From: Amoeboaphelidium protococcarum X5
Taxonomy: Eukaryota; Fungi; Aphelidiomycota
Assembly (NCBI GenBank): GCA_023515725.1
Contig: JALDTO010000136.1
Span: forward strand, 261,321 to 325,320
Direction of reading: 5' to 3'
Length of the DNA: 64,000 bases
Part shown: in pieces, positions 4,567 through 58,498 of the stretch
Position numbering within the stretch: the stretch's first letter is position 1
Layout: every line of letters starts with the position of its first letter
Notes under the pieces: generated by a model
The model's database searches: none
The model's input: the letters and a program-made list of their open reading frames with translations, nothing else
What the model was told of the DNA's origin: nothing
Position numbers and translations under genes: made by a program

Positions 4567-5735
4567 TGTTGGATTTTCTTAGTAAAGTATGTAGTGCTGT
4601 TAAGCTTGGTGTTTAACCTCAATTAGAAAGAGAAGATTGTTAATCAAGACCTGTGTCACTATCAGTGGTCAGACTTGTCACGCTTGCTCTTACGGTGGAA
4701 CTTTAAAGGAGCAGTGCCATTCTTGTGCTTATCAAGCCACCACTTAAGATGATCCCTCTCAGTACCAACTCCGTCGAAGAAACAGCGTTCCTCAGAATGA
4801 CCTGACATACCACAGTTGACGCACTTACGCTTCTTGGCCTTATCATCAAGACCAGACTTATCAGTCTTGCGCTTGCGTTTCTTGACGGTGACTGACATGG
4901 CAGTAGACTCAGCAGACGTTTCATTCGACGAACTAACTGACTTAAAATTTAATTCGGAATACTCTTCACAAAGATCACGTAACACATTAGCACAGCTCAT
5001 ATTCTCACCAGCTGTAGCTTGCTAATCAATGGACGCCTTGGGATACCACATTTTAGTAAACCGGAGTCAAACCTCTCCTCTTATGGAAGCTTCGCAAGGA
5101 AATCCAGACACAGCTACGTTTCTGAAATTACTTAGCCACCAGAGAGCGTCATTTGATATCGAATGCGCATAAGATCATTGAAGAATACCACAGGTCCTTT
5201 CAGGCTATCGAACTTAAGATTATGATATCGACGATTTAAGCGACCTTGTGCCTCCATCGTATCAGACGCGTGCAATTCTTTCAGCTTGTTCAACAGCAGC
5301 TTAACATTGGATATATTGCGTACCGTCTCAACTTGGGGTCCAAGTGATTTTTAATCACCCCAACGAGTGTGTTGTTATTAACAACTACTTACTCAATCAT
5401 GTTGATGTACTCTTCATCCAGCGCATCTTGTTTCAGTCGACCTCTCAAAACGCGCCAGTTTTGCCTTTTAAACATAGATAAGGTCTGGATATTCAGTAAG
5501 AATTTACTAGCAGTGTTCATCCAAAAGAGAGAGTCATATCCCTTGGTTAGCATCGCATTTTGAACACTGTCCAGCCAAGGCCAGTAATTGCTACCAACGA
5601 AGGATATAATGGTAGCACCACTGTTTGATCACTTATCGTTCATAATTATTGTACAGGAGAATACGTGCTGATTTTAGTAAAATATGAGAGAATAAACGTA
5701 TAGCTCAACCGCACTCATATTTTACTAAATCAACA
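4567..5735 (-). mobile_element. degenerate gag-only Ty1/copia-like LTR retroelement
   Basis: ends TGTTG...CAACA, flanked by TTAAT at 4562-4566 and 5736-5740; minus strand has copia gag-like FVGSNYWPWLDSVQNAMLTKG and a CCHC knuckle CVNCGMSGHSEERC; internal TGA and frameshifts; no pol. Confidence 0.75.
4662..5643 (-). pseudogene. retrotransposon gag remnant with zinc knuckle
   Basis: ATG 5643 is followed by an early TGA and frameshifts; open C-terminal part 4662-5000 has CX2CX4HX4C. Confidence 0.7.
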
Positions 5736-5862
5736 TTAATATTTCACACTATGCCTGTAAGCTTGAATGAATGGCAGAAATCATTTTAACTCGCACGGTT
5801 TAGTTTTCGAACGTTTCCTTCATCAATAACGAAATTTATAAAATTGATACGCAGAGGTGAAA

Positions 5863-11182: not shown

Positions 11183-11551
11183 ATGGGCAATATTGCTGCA
11201 GGTATAGCGGATGCTTAGAAAAAGAATATGGAGGCTCAGTAAAAGCAAATGATTGCTATGCAAATGGCTGCCTCTAGAGACTTGTGCATGTGGATTGGTG
11301 GTGTTTGGTCAACTCTACTGGCTGGCGCAATGATAAGCAGAAATAAAATGGTTCTTGCCCCACTTAGTGTCGTATCCGTAGTCCTTGCATACAATTTAGA
11401 TATGGCATATGGTGGTAAAATGGAAAGAATCAGGGCTGAACACTATCGCATTATCAACAATGAACAGCATTGGTTCAACCTGAAACAGAATGATCTGAAA
11501 CTAGAACAGAAAGTGAAGAGTGAATTATTAGAGCAAAAGAAGTAGTAATGA
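11183..11551 (+). CDS. PLGRKT/C9orf46-like small membrane protein
   Basis: MIAMQMAASRD..W, hydrophobic segments, LAYNLDMAYGGKMERIRAE; ends TAG TAA TGA. Confidence 0.75.
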
Positions 11552-13836: not shown

Positions 13837-15006
13837 TCAAACATTGTTCGTTGCGGCAGGCTTAGACTCCTCAGAAGGTTGTGGCATTTCAGTGCCGTCA
13901 TAGTTTCGCTTGTAATATTTATCAAAATCGTCAGTTGTCTGAATCTTTGCTGCGGTGTACAGCTCCTTCTCAGGTAGGATATTCAACATTGCAATTTCCA
14001 CAATGAACACTGCGACTCGCGTCAGAGCCAGCGAAGCCACTAGATTAACAAGCAACGCCATGAAATCAAATTTCCCAATAGATCCAGTCTACTACACTAC
14101 AATTCTCAAACCATGACGGTTTGCGATAGTGATGGTATTACCATTAGCATTGTACAGAGGTTCTTGCCATTTGAATTCAGTCTAATCAACAGGTTTAACC
14201 TGGTAGGTGTACTTCAACTCACTAGGATTTGACTCACGTACACCATAATTGATGTAAATGATAATCACTTTCCCGTCAAAACGAATAGTTGACGAAGTAC
14301 CTGGTGCAAGACTTGACTGATCAAGCCCCTGTGATCCCAGACCGGCAGCTTGAATTATTTCAGCCAAAGTGACAATATCTCCGGGAGAGTTGACATCAGC
14401 AGGAAACTCCTTGATGACATTTCCATTCTAATCAACCAACTTACCCGGCATCTACTAGGTACGTTAAGCAACTCCAGTCTCTTTACCCAGTACCACATGA
14501 TCAATAAGCATGGTATAAGATTCAATATCAGCAATGTAATACGGAGTAGACGGTTGTGCTGTGGCAAGACAGCTAGGATCTGTAGGTGGAAGATTCTGCG
14601 CAATCGAAGGCGATGCACAACCAGGAGGATAAGTGAGGTTAAAAAGACTCACTCTGGTGGTTGCCAGCAATGAACCATCTTCCAGAGTTGGAGCAACGAC
14701 ATCACTTGGCAGGTAGGCGCATCTAACAGAAGTGCTGCAATAAGTCAACTGAGAAGGCGACTTGATTGTACTCGGAGCCTTCAAGTTCATACGCACACTA
14801 CCAGAAGACGGCGGTTCAATGCTCAGGTATTTCTGATTCAAAATTATGGATATTATGATATACAGGAAGATTGCCAACGTGGATACATAGTAGAAGGCAC
14901 CCAGACGCGCATCTCTGATCTTTACAATCTTGATCGTGGAATATGCAAGAGCATCATCCCAATCGGCAATGCCAAGTTTCTCCTACAACTCGTTTATGAA
15001 TCCCAT
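13837..15006 (-). CDS. P2X purinergic receptor (ATP-gated channel)
   Basis: YSTIKIVKIRDARLG, TM1, HGLRIVVQQTGSIGKFDF, TM2, ELYTAAK; 389 aa; TGA stop. Confidence 0.9.
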
Positions 15007-16469: not shown

Positions 16470-17399
16470 TTACATCAATGAGCAAAACGAATCATCACTC
16501 CATCTGTCTAAACCCCCATTCTTACGCCTTATTTGTTCAATCAATCGATAATCTTCGGGACATATAGTTCCCATCTAAGGCATCTTTGTCCACAATGACT
16601 ATGCTCTCCTTGAATGGAAATAGTAATCTTGAGTTGCATCGTGTCTAAGAATAATTTTAATCTACTCATCAGTTTCCATATCGATTAAAGACGCGTTAGT
16701 CACGCCTCTGACTTTATTAAGGATGGGCAGCGACGTGGCGGGATGACACTTGAGGAATCCACTAACATTGTAAACTTTATCTCTTACAATCAGCCAGCAA
16801 GAATGTTCATGATTATGAGTAGCAATTTCTTTCAAGGATAACTGCTACTTCACAACTATAGAATCAGCATTATATGAGACTTTATTAAATAAAGGTAATA
16901 GCCATTAATTTTTATTATTATGATGAGCGGCAGTAGATCTTTAATTAAAGTCCACAGATTTGGAATATTCTTTACGATCCAGCATTGATCCATTCCGCCT
17001 TTATTTCGGCGATAGTTAAATCTAGCACTATATATGTGGTGCTTAATCATCTTGCTTATGCAAAGACACCAAGTCAGCGGTCTAATTCTTGGTTGACAAC
17101 GTCGGAGCTGATTAAGATGCGACTTGCGAATGGATACACAAACAATCTCTCGGATGGGATATGAGCGGACAATCCGCAAATCCTTTCACATCATTAGATA
17201 GTTATCTCGTGCATCGCCTATTGGAATCAGTTTTGGTAGAATTTTTATTGTTATTACTGAGCCGCCTACTAGGTAAATCTTCAATATCCTCAATCATGAC
17301 TATATGTCTATTAAAGTGTGCGAATATAAAAGAGAAACGCTCATTTTGAAAATCACTGATCGCAGGCAAGAAAACTTCCTTTTAGCATCTGCTGCCCAT
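16470..17399 (-). CDS. cytochrome b5-like heme-binding domain protein with C-terminal CaaX
   Basis: EIATHNHEHSCWLIVRDKVYNVSGFLKCHPA...DATQDYYFHS; ends DDSFCSLM then TAA 16470-16472; start uncertain. Confidence 0.75.
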
Positions 17400-17787: not shown

Positions 17788-18489
17788 ATGTCTACATCTA
17801 CTACTTTAAGTTTATCAGTTCTAGTACTATCATTGCTCTTATTGATGTATCCTTTTGTTTAAATACTGCTTTATGCAGTCAAACATGGTCACAATGCCTT
17901 GGCAATATGGAACTATACCTCTGTCACGCTGAGTCGCTATTATCCACGCGTAATTATAAGTGGTTTAAGTTCAATTCTTCGAATGTGGTTCCGCTTAAGT
18001 AAAGATTTATTTGAAAGTGATGTACACTGCGTATAGTCTGTCATATTCAGTCGCGTCCTGTTGGTGAATGCTAATCCATACTCCAAGTCGGCAATGATGT
18101 TTGTCACGCGTCTGCATTACAATCAGTCGACTGAAACTGGTAATTGTCATGTTGTGCTCCGTGCTCTACCCACCGACGTGTCATCCAGTATTGGTAATCC
18201 GTTTAAAAGTGTCCATGCCGCTTGTATTGCGTTATTGGGTGAAACTTGCTGTGGATTGGCCTTATTCACCACTCTGGATAGGAAGTCTCGCTGCATAGTC
18301 AGTCAACTCAATACTGAGTACTATGCTAAATCGAGAGGTATTGTTCATGCGGTTTGCTCCGTGAAAAAATTGCAATAAAGTGGATAGTTGGAAGTTGTTT
18401 GCGTTATTACATCGTAATCTCGGGAAAGTGATGTTTAACAAAAGGTTGCTAAATGTACAACTGTTTGGGAATTGAAGGTTGACTAATGA
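17788..18489 (+). CDS. PaaI/hotdog-fold thioesterase (DUF4442-like) with N-terminal TM
   Basis: NPFKSVHAACIALLGETCCGLA, EYYAKSRG; ends TAA TGA; alternative in-frame ATG at 17638. Confidence 0.8.
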
Positions 18490-18649: not shown

Positions 18650-20332
18650 TCAATGTTTAGCCTTCTTCTTGGCAGGACTCTAGCCATCAACTTCTGCAGA
18701 GTGGCCATTAGCAAATTAACTCTCAGTCACTCCTTTACCCATGGCGGCAGTGGAAGCCACACCTCCCTGCACCACCTTGATCATCTCATCGTAGTAGTTG
18801 GCGCCACTCCACTTCTAGTGCTGCAAAGTCTCGACTCCATTCTCACGCTCCTTACGCTGAATGCCTTCCACGTAAGCCAACATTCCGCGCTTAGCATAGT
18901 CTCTTGCAAACAGATCCACACCCAGAGCATTAGAGTGGAATCCACCCAGAGTGATAAACTGCCACACAATGCCCAGCTTACCCAGATCCTTAATGAATGT
19001 CTCAATCTGCTAGTCATTCATACCGGCAGCATCCCAATTGAAAGACGGGGAGAGATTGTACGCCAACATCTTATGAGGATTCTTTGCCAGGACACCAGCA
19101 GAAAACTCTTGTGCCTGCTCAAAGATCGGCTTCTTGGTCTCCATCCACAGCAAGTCACCATACGGTGCAAATGCATTAGCACGGTTGATAGCACACTTGG
19201 TACTTCCCTGGTAGCGATAGTATCCCTCACGTGTGCGCGGAGTGTCCCAGTTCCACTAAACTTCCACATTCAGCAATGACTTTGCCAATTTGCGAGCATC
19301 AGCATTAGATAAGCCAGCCGATTAAGTGTTCCATTTGGTGATCAAATCATTCACATTAGCCTGCTTGCTCTACTTGGCAGCCTCCACCACAGCCTCACCG
19401 AAAGTCTTCAGACCAGCCTACTCAATCCACTTGTCTTCAACAGCCTACAAGTCAGCACCAGACTTTCCTTGCTATTCAGCCTCGTTCATCACCTGGACCA
19501 GAGAAGGCAATTGTGTGTTGGTTGCACCAATGATAAATGCGTGATCACGATAGTCAATGTTGGAAGTCAACAACGTGGCAGCCTCGGAGTCAGTTCTTGC
19601 AACCAGAATAGTCTCAACACCCATCACATCCAACTACAGACGCATAGCCACCAGACGATTGATGTGCTCAGAGATTGGGACCAATACTTTACCAGCCATG
19701 TGACCACACTTCTTGGTGCCAGCAGCCTGATCCTCGATGTGCATACCAGAGGCACCACGCTCCACCATCATCTTGGCCAACTTCATATTAGCAGTGATAC
19801 CACCATGACCAGTATCTGCGTCGGCAACAATAGGACGCAGGAAATCAATTGGCTACTGCTTAGCTCTCTCCTCCTTGCTCAGAGACATGCGATCTTGAAA
19901 CTGCTTACGGTCATGAAACTACTGAGCCAGCCACAGATGTTCAACCTTGTTTGGTACAGTGTCCATAGGATAGTCAGCCAAATCTGGGCCAGGCTCATTG
20001 GAAGTAGATGCAGTGGATGAACACTACCAACCACTAACGTACACAGTTTCAATATACTTGGCCATCTGAGCAACCTGGATAGGATCCAGTGCACCGAAAG
20101 TGTGACTTGCAGTCTTATTAGCATGATGCTACTTCAGCAAGGACCACAGCTTCTTTGCCTGAGTGTTGGATGCATACTCCTACTTGAATGTGCCTCTCAA
20201 CTTGGCAACCTACTCTGCAGTATACGGACGCTTGATACCCTTGAATCTATCAGATTCCCACCACTTTTTAATCTGAGACACCTATTCATGGAAAGCCTTC
20301 TCCTCCTACTCAACGTACTTATTAGTAGCCAT
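18650..20332 (-). CDS. ICL1: isocitrate lyase (long, fungal/plant type)
   Basis: [47 protein letters not shown]; ends AKKKAKH-TGA. Confidence 0.97.
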
Positions 20333-22512: not shown

Positions 22513-22763
22513 AATTATGTTCCGTCTATCGGCCTAACAATGACTGTAAATTAAAGACTATGGACAGAATAATCCTGTTTACAGTGCTGTAGATTGAATA
22601 GAGTAAAGTTCAAACAATTCCGAAAGTTTCAGAGCGAGAGAACGAAATACCAACTCATCAATTCTGTACTGTAATCTTTTTTAGTTAGCAACCTCTGATC
22701 ATAATTATCACAATTGGTCGATTTCATTGTAAAAATTTAATTGGCAAATTTATAAGTGACTAG

Positions 22764-23711
22764 ATGATGAAGGATTATTACGATATACTGGGTGTGCATA
22801 AAACTGCCACTAGCGAAGAGATTAAAAAGGCGTATAAGGAACTCGCTTTATATTATCATCCTGATAAGAATGTGGGTAATGGCGAAGATACTCGTACTCA
22901 GTTCCAACAGGTATCGGAAGCTTATGAAGTGCTGCGTGACCGTGAGCTGCGATCGAGATATGATATGTATGGACATGAAGGTATTAGGTAGACTAACAAC
23001 TCGGCTGGCGGCAATCCCTCGTAATAATCCTCATCTTAGTTCCAACCTCCTCAGTTTAATCCCGCTGGTGGTAATTTCTCTGCATTTTAAATGCCTCCAT
23101 TCAATTAGCAGCGCCCACCTAGTATGTTCACTGCCAGTGGATCTAGTGGATTTGGTCTTAATTTCAATCAGTTTGACAGTATCTTTGATCATGCTTTTGG
23201 TCCTAGTCGCTTTATGGATCCAGAGGAACTGTTCCGACAAGAATTTGCATAACATCACGATATCCTGCATCAGAGTATGTTTAATCAAGTGCCAATGTTT
23301 AATAACACGTTCGCTGCCTCTAGTGGATTCTTTAACCCATAATTCATGCAAGGCTTTGGTGATCATGGTCAACTAAATCGATTGCAGTTTTAAGCAGCAT
23401 CTATTGGTACAAGGAATGGAACGTAAACGTAATCTTATTCTTCATCGTCACAAGTTTAGACTCATACCAAGATTGTCAATGGCCAACTGCAGTACTCTGA
23501 AAAGACTGTCATTGATCCCAATGGAGTTAAAACTATTGAAAAGACGTATGCTGATGGACGGTTTGAGCGAAAGGTGTTCTAGAATGGTAATCTGATTGAG
23601 AGTAGTTCTCAGTAATAGCGACAATAGATTCAGGATGGAGGATCTTAAGCATCATCATCATCATCATCATCATCTATTCCCATTAAGCGCATAGATATCG
23701 ATCGTTAATGA
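22764..23711 (+). CDS. DnaJ/Hsp40 class B chaperone
   Basis: J-domain [27 protein letters not shown]-rich region; ends IDR TAA TGA. Confidence 0.92.
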
Positions 23712-27240: not shown

Positions 27241-27732
27241 TGTCTTTTTAAAAGAGTCAGATATTGATAATGAAAAACTAGTTTAAAATGCGGTACAGAG
27301 AGTTGATAAATGAAGAGAAGATGATGATAACTTATAGGAGACTTCATCAAATGCCCATTTGTAACAGAGCATCATCATCATCATGATGGTGAATCATACA
27401 GTCAGTCGTAACACTCGCTGCTGATTGATAACTCTGCTGTCAACGCGCGAGTCAAACCAGATCGCCCGCGATGAAACAATCGACACGCGAACGACGAACG
27501 CGACAACCTTAGCGAGCATAATAGGTGCAAATTTAAATACCGACGGGCAGAGGAGAGAGACCGATGAGCGATAGAATAGAGAAAGCACACCCAACAACAA
27601 CGAGAATCTCTCCTCGCGCGCCTTGAGTAAGAATCTCGTTTTCTGGAGCCGAATTTTCTACTTTTTCTAACCTTTCATTTCCATAACTAATTTATACCAT
27701 TTATCATTGACTTAAACTATCAATTATTCAAT

Positions 27733-29049
27733 ATGAACGGAGATAGTCAAGAGGATTAGGATACGAAGAGAAATATTTAGATTTGGAAGATCAAGAAGCT
27801 GATGCACCATTTGGATAATTCAAAGGGAAACGGAACATCCATGGTGTCTATGATTATTCCACCTAAAGATTAGTTGAGCAGAGTGCAGAAAATGCTTTTG
27901 GATGAACAAGGTGCCGCCGTCAACATCAAATCCAGAGTTAATAAGCAATCTGTACTGGCTGCTATTACATCCGCTTCTTAGAGACTCAAGTTGTACAGCA
28001 AAGTGCCGCCTAATGGGCTGATTCTATTCACTGGTACCATCATTAATGAAGAGGGTAAGGAGAAGAAGATCACCATTGACTTTGAGCCATTCAAGCCGAT
28101 CAACACGTCCATGTACTAGTGTGATAATAGATTCCACACTGAGGCATTGCATGAATTGCTTGAGAATGATTCCAAATTTGGCTTCATCATCATGGATGGT
28201 CATGGAACGTTATTTGGTTCAGTGTCTGGTAGTGCTAGAGAGATTTTGCATAAATTCGACGTGGATCTGCCAAAGAAGCACGGACGTGGTGGTCAGTCTG
28301 CGATGCGTTTTGCACGTTTGCGTATGGAGAAGCGTCACAATTATATCAGAAAGGTGGCAGAGTTGGCCACGTAGTTGTTCATCAATGTAGATAGGCCTAA
28401 TGTGTCCGGTCTCGTGCTGGCCGGTTCCGCTGACTTTAAGACTGAACTGTCGCAGTCTGATTTGTTCGATCCGCGTCTGCAGCCTATCATTGTGAACATT
28501 GTGGATATCTCTTATGGTGGTGAGAATGGATTTAATTAGGCGATTGAATTGTCTGCTGATGCTTTGGCTAATGTCAAGTTTGTCTAGGAGAAGAAGTTGA
28601 TTTAGAAGTACTTTGAACTCATCAACTTGGATAGTGGAAAGTTTTGTTTTGGTGTTGATGACACGATGAAGTGTTTGATGGACATGCGTGCAGTGGAGCA
28701 TTTAATTGTGTATGAGAATTTGGAAATCACTAGATATGTGTGCCGTCACCCATAGACTGAAGAAGAGAAGGTGTGCTACGTGCGTCCTGATTAGGAGAAG
28801 GATATGTCGTTCCTGAAGGATCAAGTCTCTGGAGTTGAGTATGAAGTCGTGGACAAGATGTCTCTGGTAGAATGGCTAACTGAGCACTATCAGGAATTCG
28901 GAGCCAAGATGGATCTGGTTACTGATAAGAGTTAGGAGGGATCTTAGTTCGTGCGAGGATTTGGTGGTATTGGCGCCATCCTGCGATACAGAGTTAATCT
29001 GGAGTAGATTGCCATGTATGAGGATGAGGACATGTGGGAAGATGATTGA
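27733..29049 (+). CDS. SUP45: eukaryotic peptide chain release factor 1 (eRF1)
   Basis: GNGTSM, NIKS, Yx[36 protein letters not shown]; 438 aa; 14 in-frame TAG; TGA stop. Confidence 0.98.
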
Positions 29050-29256: not shown

Positions 29257-29358
29257 ATTAGAAGCATCGACTGTCGGTGAATCCCAGCTCAATAAACAAT
29301 TGAAATGCAACCCCCTTCGCTTCTGTTTGCGCAATCACACCAAGAATCGTTCAACTGA

Positions 29359-30528
29359 TCAAGATAACACGTCGTTCATTGCGGTGAGAACGTCAGAAGC
29401 AATCGGAACAAGTACTCCTTCCTCAAAATAAAATAGTCCCGAGTCTATCCACGGATTAGATGCCGACAGTTGCTTTTAATATTGATTGGTCACCACACAT
29501 GTCGCAAACAGCAAACTATCCTTATCAGAATGACGCTGGATGACACGCTTAACTCTTTCTGTGAAGTACTTCAAATTTGCATTTCGCACATTCACAGCAT
29601 TAATAGACGACCAAGTTGGGTCACCGTGCATACTCATATATTCCTGCTTCACCGCCATCAAAAGTCGCGGAACAGTACCTGTTAGCTTCAACAAATCTTC
29701 GTCACTCAATTGAGTGATAGGAGGCAGTAATCGCCTGTTACGATAATGGGTCACCATTGCCTGCCATTCTTCCTTTCGGTAGAGACTAATCTTCTTCGGT
29801 GCAAGTACGGCATCATAGTCTGAAAACATGCCAGAATTACTGAGATCAAACGAAGATGAAACCGCAAGCAACGTGAACCCCCAGCTTCCGTTAAATTTGC
29901 TAAAATGGCCAAATAAATTCTTGAGCAGTGGTTGTTTAATGCCGCCAGCTTCTTGCAAGCAATTCCACTGATCAATGCCCACAAATACTGGAACTTTACA
30001 TCGGCTCATGAATCCTAGGATGTTCATCAACTCATGGGTAGCTTATCCGGAATTGCGCACCCCATTCAGTGCACTTTCTCGTATGGTCTTTAGGCTGTCG
30101 TTGCTTTAGTGGTTATCGAGTAAGGGCGCGTTCATTTCCAGAATCATGTTCAGAATTTCAACTGAGACGCGCGTATCTTCTTGCTCATCAAACCGGGTAG
30201 TTGACGCAATATACAACACGAACCATGACCCTTTGACAATACAATCTCGAGCACATAAGTATAGCAAAAGCGATTTACCGACGCCTGCCGGCCCGACAAT
30301 GACTCTCTTTGAATAGCGCTGTAAATGTGCAGGAATCTCAACAATTCTTTGTACCTCATCACGTACCGCCTCCAACTCAGGCCTTCGAAGTACAGTAAGA
30401 TGTCGTTCCTCGCCAGAATCAAGTAGTAACGATGACGGTGGTGAGGATAGCACGTTCAACAAATCCACGCTTTCAAAAGATGCTGACATTACAGATTGAT
30501 TTTCAGAAGATAAAATATTCGCAATCAT
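29359..30528 (-). CDS. Crinkler-associated-like P-loop NTPase, probably truncated or degenerate
   Basis: LRRPELE, Walker A IVGPAGVGKS, Walker B VFVGIDQWN, LTGTVPRLL, DSGLFY; a frameshifted KGVAFQ remnant follows TGA 29359. Confidence 0.65.
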
Positions 30529-30672
30529 TTTTATCAGTAAATGGCCAACAGGGAAAAAAGACCGACTATATTAAGTTGTCACGTTCACTGATGAGATATA
30601 TGATCCGCTTCTCTAAATCTCTGTTAGTGTTAAAATTCTTACAAAATTTTGGTCTTTACTCCTCGAGCAATT

Positions 30673-30825
30673 AAAAGTAAACTTTAAAATCACAGATATA
30701 TTTTAATTCATCATCATTTACAAGTGAATACAAGACATACCATCTCTTTGTATCACCACCGCTACTAGACAGAATATCACTTTTTCATATTCGCCACAGC
30801 CTGTTCAGCCTTCTTCATCTTGACA
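30673..30825. repeat. copy B of the ~150-bp direct repeat
   Basis: last codons and 3' flank of the LRR-PP2C gene; matches 29112-29256. Confidence 0.85.
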
Positions 30826-36243: not shown

Positions 36244-37692
36244 TCATTACTTCACAAGCTTACATAATTCAATCCCTTTTTACACTTGATACTTGCACAG
36301 TGCCGGCGAGAGGAATATACTAATCAGCCCAGCGAAAGAGATGCCTAACGTGTCACTAACAGCCGCGGAGGCCATTGCGAATTCGCGACTGTCGCTCGAG
36401 TAATTCTGATCTGCTCCAAATCTCTATCGTATCTAATTAAAAGCATTAACATACGTGGATCCGCCCAGCAACCCTTCCCATAAAATCACAATGTAAATTA
36501 AGTATACAGATGGAATAAATCTGAATAGGGCTTCACTAATCAAGAAGATGAGCGTGCCAACTTGCAGTAGACTAAGAATCCAAATCTGACGAATGGGAAA
36601 CCACTCCACTGAGCTTCTACTGACTAGAACACCGATCTAGTATAGAAATTAATAGTACACATACGCGTCTCTTAATCGAGATATTTCATCCTAAGATGGC
36701 GACGGTGAAGCGTAGAGCAAGTTCGGACATACTCCCTAGTTTATAGTATACTCAGCCATAAATACCAGAAATAAAGGCAGCATGAACGGGACAAACATTA
36801 TTCGCAGTATCGATAACCTTTCATTTAAAGCCAGTTTACCGCTACCATTAGATACAGTTGATACGAACTATTACTCATCCACAATGTACATTCCATCGGA
36901 CGATTGTGGCTACTCTTCAGGTAATACTTGATAATCCGCTTATGATACTATAGCTCTCTTTAGATTGAAGAGTCCAAATAGTCGCCCGACTATCGTCTGA
37001 TCCGATGCGGAGCCAGTCCAATGTCGTAAAAGAATAAAGTAAGAGTACGCCATGAAGAGGGGTGCAATACTAGCAATTGCCAGTGTGATAGTGAGCGATA
37101 CTCTGAGCCAAGTAGTAAGAGCCAAATACGCCAGCGCTCCACCAACACCAGCCATTCCCGTTCCGGTAGACCATCCCGACAGAGCCATGGTGCTTAGCAG
37201 TTCACGACTATTATGATCATCGCGGTCTACAAATTGCGGAGCAGAAGTCAGAGATAGAAACGAAATCTCTCCCAGGCCGCTTGCAATGGATGCAAGGACT
37301 ATCCCAAATAATCGAATCCAGATATTGGGAATCCAGGCGACTACGTGCAAAGATATAAAACTTAGGGCGATGCATATGAATATTCTCAGGTCATAGCCCA
37401 CCCGGTGCATCATATGAGGAAATACAAATTTCACAATAAGCGATGGGATAATATCAGCCAGCAATATAGAACCTTCGCTCACACCTGTATTCTCTTGCTA
37501 CTTTATGATATCTTGTGCAGCACTCAGAAACACGACATAGGTGAAATTATTGATCAGACCGCATATTGCAAATCCAATGCGAATCTACCTTCTACTCAGA
37601 GGTGGGTCATTAGCAGGAACCTGATCAGTTTCTTCCACTTGGATATTGTCGCATTCATGTAAATTGGATATTTTTCGCATGCTCACAGACAT
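36244..37692 (-). CDS. BTN1: battenin (CLN3/Btn1) vacuolar membrane protein
   Basis: GLINNFTYVVFLSAAQDI, ILLADIIPSL, SGLGEISFL, GWSTGTGMAG, EYTINQG, WEGLLGGSTYVNAF; ends VK TAA TGA. Confidence 0.94.
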
Positions 37693-53715: not shown

Positions 53716-55476
53716 ATGCCAGATTAATGTGATCATCCAGTTCAATTTCATGGACTGTGTGCTGTATGCGGCTAGGAAGTGAGGGAACTCGATCAATTGA
53801 CTAGCGATAAGTCAGAGTATGAAACTTTTGCGATGGTACCCACTCATAGAGATATAAAGGTGACTAAGAACGAGGCATAAAAGATTGAACGTTAGATTGC
53901 ACAGCGACTGATGGAGGAGAAGAAGTTGTCGCTTATATTAGACTTGGATTAGACTGTACTCCATGCTTCCGTTAATCAGCGAATTGGAGAGGTTATTCAC
54001 AATGATCCTACAGTATAGTAATGGAGCGTTACTAAGGATGTGCATAGTTTTACTCTGCCGCATGATCCTAGACTCAGATACTACGTAAAGTTACGGCCTG
54101 GATTGTACGAGTTCCTGAAAGACATGTCCAAGTTGTATGAATTTCATATCTACACTATGGGAACGCGGTCTTATGCTGAGGCTGTCAGACTTATCATCGA
54201 TCCGCGCAATGAACTCTTTAAGGAGCGAATTCTAACAAGAGACGAAAGTGGAAGTAACATTTCTAAAGAAATCAAGAATATATTCCCTTGCGATTCCTCC
54301 ATGGTGTTAATTTTGGATGACAGGTCGGATGTGTGGAATTGGTCCGATAATTTGATCAAAGTCAAGCCTTATACGTTCTTTTACGGTACTGAGGACATCA
54401 ATGCTCCCGGTTAATAGACACCAGATAGTAAAGCGGACAAAGTACTCCCACCATATGTATCTGATAGCTCTAATGAATCTAATGATGTACCGGCTAATGC
54501 TAGAATGTCTTCTGAAGATTTAAGTGGAAAGTAGTTGTAAGGCACTTCCATTCCATCTCAAAATATGCGATTATCAAGTGGTAGAGCACCGTTTCCCAAC
54601 ATTGATGCTGATACTGAGCTATTCCAGTTGAAAGATATTTTAACATTTGTGCACGCTTAATTCTTTAGTGAAAGCTCAAGTGCCACGGACGCGCAAGTTG
54701 GCCATTAGAGAAATGCTGCCTAAATTCTAAAGGAGCGAAAGAGTCAAGTACTTGGCGGTGTGTCTGCCTGCTTTTCTGCCGTGTTTCCCACCAGCTTGAA
54801 TGATGGAACTACAGTTGATGTCACTAAATACCACGACTGGAAGTTGTTTTCATCTTATGGTGCGGTGTTGAGACCTGATTTCTCTATGACTGATATCACC
54901 CATCTGGTAGCTCATAATCCCGGAACTGTCAAAGTGGAGACTGTTAGAAAGCATAATAAAAGTGCCAAAGCTGAGGATAAAATATGGATTGTAACGCCGC
55001 AATACTTTCATGATTGTATTAGTACTTGGTAGCGTTTGTCTGAACTGGATTATTTGGTTATTTAGAATGATTAGTTATGTATTGGGCGACCTCTAAACTT
55101 GATTGACTCTGCTAATATTCCACAAAAGGCTCAATCTGCTTATAATGAGAATGGTGGCATTTAAGACGTAAATTAATCCCTTAAAAACGAGGGAGATGAA
55201 TCGGTATTGGATGATGACTATATTCTGGATGAAGATGCCCTGAATGATCTTGAATAAGAACTTTTGGATGAGCTAGAGTCTACAACCGGCAGTTTAATGG
55301 ATGAAGAGCCTGTATAAAAAGATGGTAGCGAATCCTTTAATGCTGACAATCATGATCAAGATGAGGAGGACCAGATTAGACCAAAGAGAAAAAAGGCCAA
55401 GAGATCATCAGATTCTCCTACAAGAGAACTACGATCTCGATCTAACAGTCCATCCAAGAGAATGCGTAAATAATGA
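53716..55476 (+). CDS. FCP1: RNA polymerase II CTD phosphatase
   Basis: CDHPVQFHGLCAVCG, KLSLILDLDQTVLHA (Q=TAG), YVKLRPG, YTMGTRSYA, ILDDRSDVW, BRCT THLVA..GTVKV; ends RK TAA TGA. Confidence 0.95.
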
Positions 55477-57811: not shown

Positions 57812-58498
57812 TTACATCACAACGCACTTCTTCTTCTGGCCCTTCTTTGCAGCTTTATCAGCAATGCCCTTCTTAATCTTGTACTCACGCACCTTTGCCA
57901 CCAGAGTGTAATAAGCTTCATCTACATTCTGCTTTGTCTTGGCACTAGTCTCAATGTATTGCATATTCCACTGTGCCGCCTTTCGCTGAGCCTCCTCCAC
58001 AGTCACCTTTCTCAAGTGAGCCAAATCGGCCTTATTACCAACCAGAAGCATCGGCATATCATTCGCCTCCCCACCACCGCTTGCATTCAGCACACGCAAA
58101 ATCTAATCTCTAAACTCACTCACATGCTAGAACGACTCATTCTCAGTGATACTGAATACCAGAGCAAACCCCTCACCACTTCTGTAATAATTATCCCGAA
58201 TCGCTGCATACTCCTCCTGACCGGCAGTATCGAGGATATCAACAACATTCTCCTCCTTCATATTATTACTACTACCATTCGACTGTCCAGAAGCACCTAC
58301 AGAACCAGACTACGCAAACTTCACAATAGTCTCTAGCGGAACCTTTTTTCGATACGAGTCAGCCTTGGTGGGTTCATACTCTTCAACAAAATCTCCATAC
58401 ATAAACTGGAGTGTGAGAGCAGACTTTCCCACTCCACCAGTACCGCACATTAACAATCTGGACACTTGCAAACTTGCCGCTTACTTTTCTTACGGCAT
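57812..58498 (-). CDS. RAL: Ral-like small GTPase
   Basis: [16 protein letters not shown], Ral effector loop [34 protein letters not shown]; ends KKKCVVM then TAA. Confidence 0.93.

Follow-up and report, generated by a model that had tools for sequence, protein, structure and literature searches.

Amoeboaphelidium protococcarum reads UAA and UAG (UAR) as glutamine, and this code has already been published, as cited in PMC5304391. Whether eRF1 needs to lose a stop codon before that codon is reassigned is still disputed, and the data come nearly all from ciliates. We analyzed a stretch of 64,000 nucleotides of contig JALDTO010000136.1 (positions 261,321 to 325,320, hereafter the window), which contains an eRF1 gene. 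The initial annotation had proposed that remodelling of this eRF1 is the molecular basis of the reassignment and that recognition of UAA may persist. Here we ask what eRF1 contributes to the reassignment and whether UAA is still a stop.

The eRF1 gene, its homeologue, and the surrounding region

The assembly containing the window comprises 23.6 Mb in 346 contigs. Genome-wide duplications have been published for A. protococcarum (PMC10608142), and the homeologous blocks are approximately 90% identical. Long ORFs were found only with TGA as the sole stop. In 22 homeologous pairs, 46 of 69 changed TAA codons were opposite TAG, CAA, or CAG, and 64 of 79 changed TAG codons were opposite a glutamine codon. 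As in table 6, glutamine positions carry both in-frame TAA and in-frame TAG, and the usage of TAA and TAG follows that of CAA and CAG across genes. Conservation in the homeologue alignments stops at TGA in nearly all genes; UGA is the predominant stop and terminates the large majority of genes. The mitochondrial contig (C346), containing cob, cox1, cox3, and nad genes, several of them interrupted by homing-endonuclease-like ORFs, reads without reassignment of TAA or TAG. The mitochondrial cox3 of this assembly matches a protein labelled Amoeboaphelidium protococcarum at 100% identity.

The eRF1 gene encodes a protein with the three-domain layout of canonical eRF1 (human, yeast, wheat). Its N, M, and C domains carry the GTS, NIKS, YxCxxxF, and GGQ motifs, its overall identity to yeast, plant, and animal eRF1 is 62–69%, and it is distinct from pelota. 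The genome search for eRF1 paralogues that the initial annotation had proposed uncovered two near-identical copies and no canonical paralogue. There were four PF03463 matches in the genome, two of them pelota and two eRF1, and a search with the M domain likewise found just two eRF1 loci. A hidden canonical paralogue was ruled out, as both searches gave the two homeologues alone.

Table 1 Positions of the eRF1 features, gene ends, and stop-reading tRNA genes (window coordinates unless a contig is named).
Feature	Position	Strand	Remarks
eRF1 CDS	27733..29049	+	438 aa, intronless, 14 in-frame TAG as Gln, no TAA, TGA stop
N domain (stop-codon recognition)	27733..28167	+	human residues 1-142
GTS loop region	27823..27852	+	GTS 27832-27840 intact; flanked by R28K, I35V, L37M; S36 kept
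E55 to V71	27904..27954	+	TASNIKS to AAVNIKS, plus F56Q, R68K, L69Q; E55, NIKS, R65, N67, S70, V71 kept
Codon starts, F56Q / T58A / S60V / R68K / L69Q	27907 / 27913 / 27919 / 27943 / 27946	+	
Residues 122-131	28105..28134	+	L124M, L126Q (TAG 28117-28119), K130R; Y125, C127, F131 kept
Codon starts, L124M / L126Q / K130R	28111 / 28117 / 28129	+	
GGQ motif	28288..28296	+	catalytic Gln CAG here, TAG (codon 188) in C244 homeologue
TGA stop of eRF1	29047..29049	+	same in homeologue
TAA right after Ral CVVM CaaX box	57812..57814	-	next in-frame TGA 25 codons on
TAA after CSLM, cytochrome b5-like gene	16470..16472	-	kept in homeologue; weaker case
TAA-TGA gene end	23706..23711	+	kept in homeologue
Other TAA-TGA gene ends	11546-11551, 55471-55476, 18484-18489	+	
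Other TAA-TGA gene end	36244-36249	-	
tRNA, anticodon CTA	C158:362956-363027 and C200:31431-31502		ARAGORN
tRNA, anticodon TTA	C158:383536-383608 and C200:16432-16504		ARAGORN

The two eRF1 homeologues differ by 50 silent changes and one replacement, S366T, which lies outside the N domain, and the gene is under strong purifying selection. Run X5, which comes from another strain, supplies a 1149-nt contig that spans 27720-28868 without gaps and shows 31 differences from the window, silent except for S366T. Contigs of this run, whose library type is unrecorded, were found on genes and none were intergenic, which suggests an RNA origin. The metatranscriptome X14 contains eRF1 pieces identical to the window. 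The homeologue changes together with the X5 contigs and X14 pieces indicate an intact, conserved, and expressed gene. Because the homeologue has TAG for the GGQ glutamine and CAG for L126Q, the reading of both codons is fixed, and an active C244 copy requires UAG readthrough. The absence of TAA from the eRF1 mRNA was considered as autoregulation and rejected, as the homeologue has two TAA and the use of TAA and TAG follows that of CAA and CAG across genes. Database searches with uninterrupted pieces of eRF1, one at a time, found no close relative in metagenome contigs or proteins (best 75–83% on pieces), and branching was not resolved in the eRF1 tree. A literature search, which did not extend to the genome paper, found no published analysis of this eRF1.

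The region around the gene differs from its homeologous block in several places. The ORF at 29359-30738 (minus strand) has no counterpart there, with the alignment skipping from 29257 to 30672 (window 29258-30670). An insertion at window 4567-5854 is missing from the homeologue and directly follows a GT32-like gene whose true end is possibly TAA. Conversely, approximately 5.7 kb within C244:140600-160400 is missing from the window near 22516-22659; two ORFs in this extra sequence have an identical C-terminus, which suggests a tandem duplication. The window also contains a P2X-receptor-like gene (13837-15006, minus strand) and an isocitrate-lyase-like gene (18650-20332, minus strand), both judged by eye from motifs.

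Substitutions and retained residues in the N domain

We aligned the eRF1 pieces to human eRF1 (residue offset +3). All eight substitutions listed in the initial annotation were present (Table 1), and GTS (G31-T32-S33), E55, NIKS, S70, Y125, C127, and GGQ were intact as it had stated; S36, R65, N67, V71, and F131 are kept as well. Other sites that are otherwise invariant have also changed, namely R28K, I35V, and L37M adjoining the GTS loop, and E13Q, A53L, Q79S, Y96F, and T102N. Relative to five references, the N domain is altered at 19 of 98 invariant sites and the M domain at 7 of 91 (Fisher p=0.02), while the C domain is altered at 14 of 59 (N versus C p=0.55). Since the C domain is as changed as the N domain, part of the N-domain change reflects general lineage divergence. 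The acceleration of the N domain is real relative to the M domain, yet not confined to the N domain.

The changes were then compared with non-redundant homologues, which include environmental sequences whose genetic codes are not established and hold no standard-code aphelid. T58A, S60V, and R68K were found in none of 41 and L126Q in none of 51. A degenerate Obelidium paralogue (P0118) carries T58A. L69Q is common (16 of 41, and also wheat eRF1), as is K130R (14 of 51), position 56 is highly variable, and L124M occurs in 4 of 51. Of the eight changes listed in the initial annotation, these four are not diagnostic, and of the rare ones S60V is tolerated in human eRF1, where positions 59, 60, and 64 are tolerant and S60V is among the mutants (PMC3632111). 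E55, Y125, and C127 are invariant across the homologue sets compared. The 15 decoding residues listed by Kryuchkova et al. are all kept except R68, which is lysine here, and all direct codon contacts are retained.

Published work assigns functions to several of these positions. In PMC3632111, T32, S36, and F131 serve A2, E55, Y125, and N129 serve G3 of UAG, S33 and S70 serve UGA, and R68A impairs all three stops; R68 supports the NIKS loop (PMC5681627). L124M is part of the QFM_F set of the UGA-only Stylonychia (PMC3632111), and T58 is altered and C127 retained in the UGA-only Paramecium (PMC5681627). The yeast mutant L123Q, equivalent to L126Q, has a mild effect, with readthrough of 4.4, 5.4, and 3.4% at UAA, UAG, and UGA, respectively, compared with 2.6, 2.6, and 2.4% (PMC4482090 Table S3), corresponding to 2.1x for UAG, 1.7x for UAA, and 1.4x for UGA (PMC4482090). 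No published assay of R68K or T58A was found in the literature search. The direction of the known effects fits a bias toward UGA. As each known single effect is small, any large effect would have to come from the combination. Variant-code eukaryotes typically have altered eRF1 motifs, and Swart et al. found that eRF1 substitutions do not map simply onto codes (PMC4967479).

The retention of E55, Y125, and C127 had been taken to allow for residual UAA recognition. This argument does not hold: because E55 and Y125 are assigned to reading G3 of UAG and C127 is kept in the UGA-only Paramecium, their retention says nothing on UAA versus UAG.

Stop-reading tRNAs and gene ends

The initial annotation had also called for a genome search for tRNA-Gln with UUA and CUA anticodons. 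Both were found (Table 1) and are related to tRNA-Gln. Because 63 of 1171 tRNA candidates were scored, the copy numbers are lower bounds (at least two CTA and at least two TTA). The tRNAs with CTA and TTA anticodons align with the nuclear tRNA-Gln(TTG), and this similarity suggests that they are charged with glutamine. In both, 27:43 is unpaired, leaving an anticodon stem of 4 bp, while that of tRNA-Gln(TTG) has five pairs, one of them G-U. For tRNA-Trp, a short anticodon stem raises readthrough (bioRxiv 2023.06.19.543857).

We examined gene ends for signs that UAA still terminates. The Ral gene ends in KKKCVVM-TAA. An AT-rich stretch containing four further in-frame TAA separates this end from the TGA, and KCVVM-TAA is conserved in both Ral homeologues as well as in a third locus. 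Ral requires a terminal CaaX. An intron restoring a CaaX ahead of the TGA was ruled out, as no splice from the GTAAG word works. Ral is the best single case for UAA termination. For the cytochrome b5-like gene, only introns of at least 386 nt across a convergent ORF would rescue the CaaX.

The codon preceding TGA was counted in 61 independent genes picked by a codon model, a small set in which genes were defined by ending in TGA and a few of the ORFs are doubtful. This codon was TAA in 7–8 genes, TAG in none, and CAA or CAG in 0–1. TAA at this position exceeds both its frequency inside genes (1.5%; p 4e-6 to 4e-5) and its frequency before TGA in 3' flanks (2.5%; p 1e-4). As TAA makes up 22% of internal glutamine codons, its excess over TAG, CAA, and CAG combined has a p of about 1e-4 to 1e-5. 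Enrichment of TAA extends over codons -1 and -2. Further from the end, TAA was not depleted in the 61 genes (1.3–1.9% at 6–30 codons, compared with 1.5% inside), and CYB2 has a sense TAA 14–15 codons ahead of its terminal SKL in both homeologues.

Genome-wide, K-C-a-a-X-TGA had 50 matches compared with 11 in a reversed control, approximately 14 of the 50 being repeat copies. An identical 18-nt word for K-C-A-I-L-TGA occurs about 10 times on at least 10 contigs (for example C136:376819 and C146:497965) and is probably part of a repeat element; its repetition inflates the CaaX-TGA counts. K-C-a-a-X-TAA was barely above the control (34 versus 28), and a narrower CaaX pattern was followed by TAA 6 times and by CAA 7 times. 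True HDEL was followed by TGA seven times and by TAA once. Across the genome-wide CaaX, HDEL, and GFGG counts, the TGA signal is clear and TAA is at background.

Other observations concern individual ends and contexts. In a peroxiredoxin pair (L027:2830-2840 and its homeologue L028), one copy ends in CAA-TGA and the other in TAA-TGA. At two loci (C52:4440-4457 and C142:73137-73154), an identical 15-nt sequence for KCSIL precedes TAA in one case and TGA in the other, a possible TAA/TGA swap at a CaaX end. Sense TAA is seldom followed by G (odds ratio 0.37, p 2e-6), as if strong stop contexts were avoided. This reading was rejected, because T|AAG shows the same deficit out of frame (odds ratio 0.41), which points to a nucleotide-level bias. 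In the coding sequence of the window and C244, TAAG is rarer than CAAG both in and out of frame, which may reflect splice-donor avoidance or mutation bias.

The Ral end and the TAA-TGA excess hint at residual UAA termination. The earlier proposal of residual UAA recognition is supported by the gene ends and not by the retained residues. It is the gene ends that speak for a difference between UAA and UAG, and the yeast L123Q data point weakly the same way. That UAA is dual, being glutamine inside genes and a stop at some ends, is possible, with a chance slightly short of even.

Explanations for the reassignment and known systems

The proposal that eRF1 is the molecular basis of the code is supported in part. 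This is the only type of eRF1 in the genome, and its rare changes at T58, R68, and L126 concern positions for which effects are known from mutagenesis or from UGA-only ciliates, but the proposal ignored the cognate UUA and CUA tRNAs. It is likely that eRF1 contributes to the reassignment alongside the tRNAs. The best explanation, which we consider probable as a whole, is that the eRF1 at 27733-29049 serves A. protococcarum as its functional class-1 release factor and would favour UGA, with its codon contacts kept and its second shell altered, acting together with the tRNAs. Residues around the contacts would have changed together (T58A, R68K, L124M/L126Q, and, adjoining the GTS loop, R28K/I35V/L37M). 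Most likely this would shift the pocket toward G at the second position, so that UGA is read well and UAG and UAA poorly. Inside genes, the weakened eRF1 would lose to the cognate tRNA-Gln(UUA) and tRNA-Gln(CUA), and the reassignment would have come about through the gain of the tRNAs and the weakening of eRF1 together. Recognition of UAA would probably be reduced and not abolished, and may, with about an even chance, suffice for a minority of genes, Ral among them. The full reading, with UAG as pure glutamine, UGA as the main stop, UAA as dual, and one eRF1 detuned by T58A, R68K, L124M, and L126Q, a set that ciliates do not show, is put forward tentatively. Against the best explanation, the single changes assayed in other eRF1s have a mild effect (L123Q) or none (S60V), and the C domain is equally diverged.

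The eRF1 could instead be strictly UGA-only (code 6), in which case the CaaX-TAA and TAA-TGA ends would be relic UAA stops that are now terminal glutamines, or artefacts of introns or tolerated extensions. TAA encodes glutamine near true ends, as in both copies of CYB2, without depletion at 6–30 codons, genome-wide K-C-a-a-X-TAA is near control, the peroxiredoxin pair exchanges TAA-TGA with CAA-TGA, and M-TAA includes a splice-donor-like GTAA word. We nevertheless find this somewhat doubtful: Ral needs its CaaX and no GTAAG splice restores one, KCVVM-TAA is kept in the homeologues and a third locus, and a neutral relic would be expected to drift to other glutamine codons, whereas TAA far outnumbers TAG, CAA, and CAG at codon -1. 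A still omnipotent eRF1, with substitutions by neutral drift and reassignment through abundant cognate tRNAs and context such as poly(A) proximity, a scenario put forward for Condylostoma, would agree with the Kryuchkova et al. residues being kept bar R68, with the equal divergence of the C and N domains, and with the 4-bp anticodon stem of the suppressor tRNAs, a feature boosting readthrough in tRNA-Trp (bioRxiv 2023.06.19.543857). This is unlikely, since no gene was found to end at TAG (at codon -1, 0 of 61), sense TAA and TAG near true ends are undepleted, unlike in codes with proximity-dependent stops, and the rare changes are concentrated where effects on specificity are known.

If UAA is still read and UAG is not, the two codons would be uncoupled at the release factor. 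If UAA is truly dual, a dual-meaning codon would exist in a fungal relative, which would represent a present-day intermediate in the reassignment of stops, and under table-6 annotation prenylated proteins, Ral for instance, would be given false extensions at the C-terminus. Should eRF1 simply be UGA-only, it would have reached an end point already known by a further independent route. Given the 62–69% identity, the few candidate changes, and the position of the lineage as sister group of fungi, a yeast chimera is a direct test.

The code is already known. The set of substitutions differs from the ciliate determinants. The UGA-only eRF1 of Stylonychia and Oxytricha (QFM_F: T122Q/S123F/L124M/L126F) shares with A. 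protococcarum UAR as glutamine, L124M, and a changed position 126. In A. protococcarum, however, T122 and S123 are canonical, position 126 is Gln and not Phe, the TASNIKS flank and R68 are also altered, and the origin is independent, in a fungus-related lineage. Paramecium and Tetrahymena (SIKD/DPQ; KATNIKD) likewise have UAR as glutamine, T58 replaced, and C127 kept; since NIKS, E55, and N129 are intact here, their determinants are absent. Of the QFM_F and SIKD/DPQ motifs, only L124M is found in A. protococcarum eRF1.

Condylostoma, Parduczia, Blastocrithidia, and Amoebophrya resemble A. protococcarum in that a codon may be both sense and stop, and the tRNA-Trp of Blastocrithidia has a 4-bp anticodon stem like that of the stop-reading tRNAs here. 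In contrast to Condylostoma-type codes, UGA stays a dedicated stop in A. protococcarum, S70 is kept, and the dual role would be confined to UAA and to a minority of genes. The depletion of the sense codon before true stops that a code of the Condylostoma or Blastocrithidia type would lead one to expect was not seen in the 61 genes. In Iotanema spirale and the rhizarian exLh, where only UAG is reassigned (T32G, L69A), UAA and UAG differ at gene ends, as they would here if residual UAA recognition holds. A. protococcarum differs from these in using UAA abundantly as a sense codon, for which it has a dedicated tRNA, and in retaining T32; its L69Q is a common variant.
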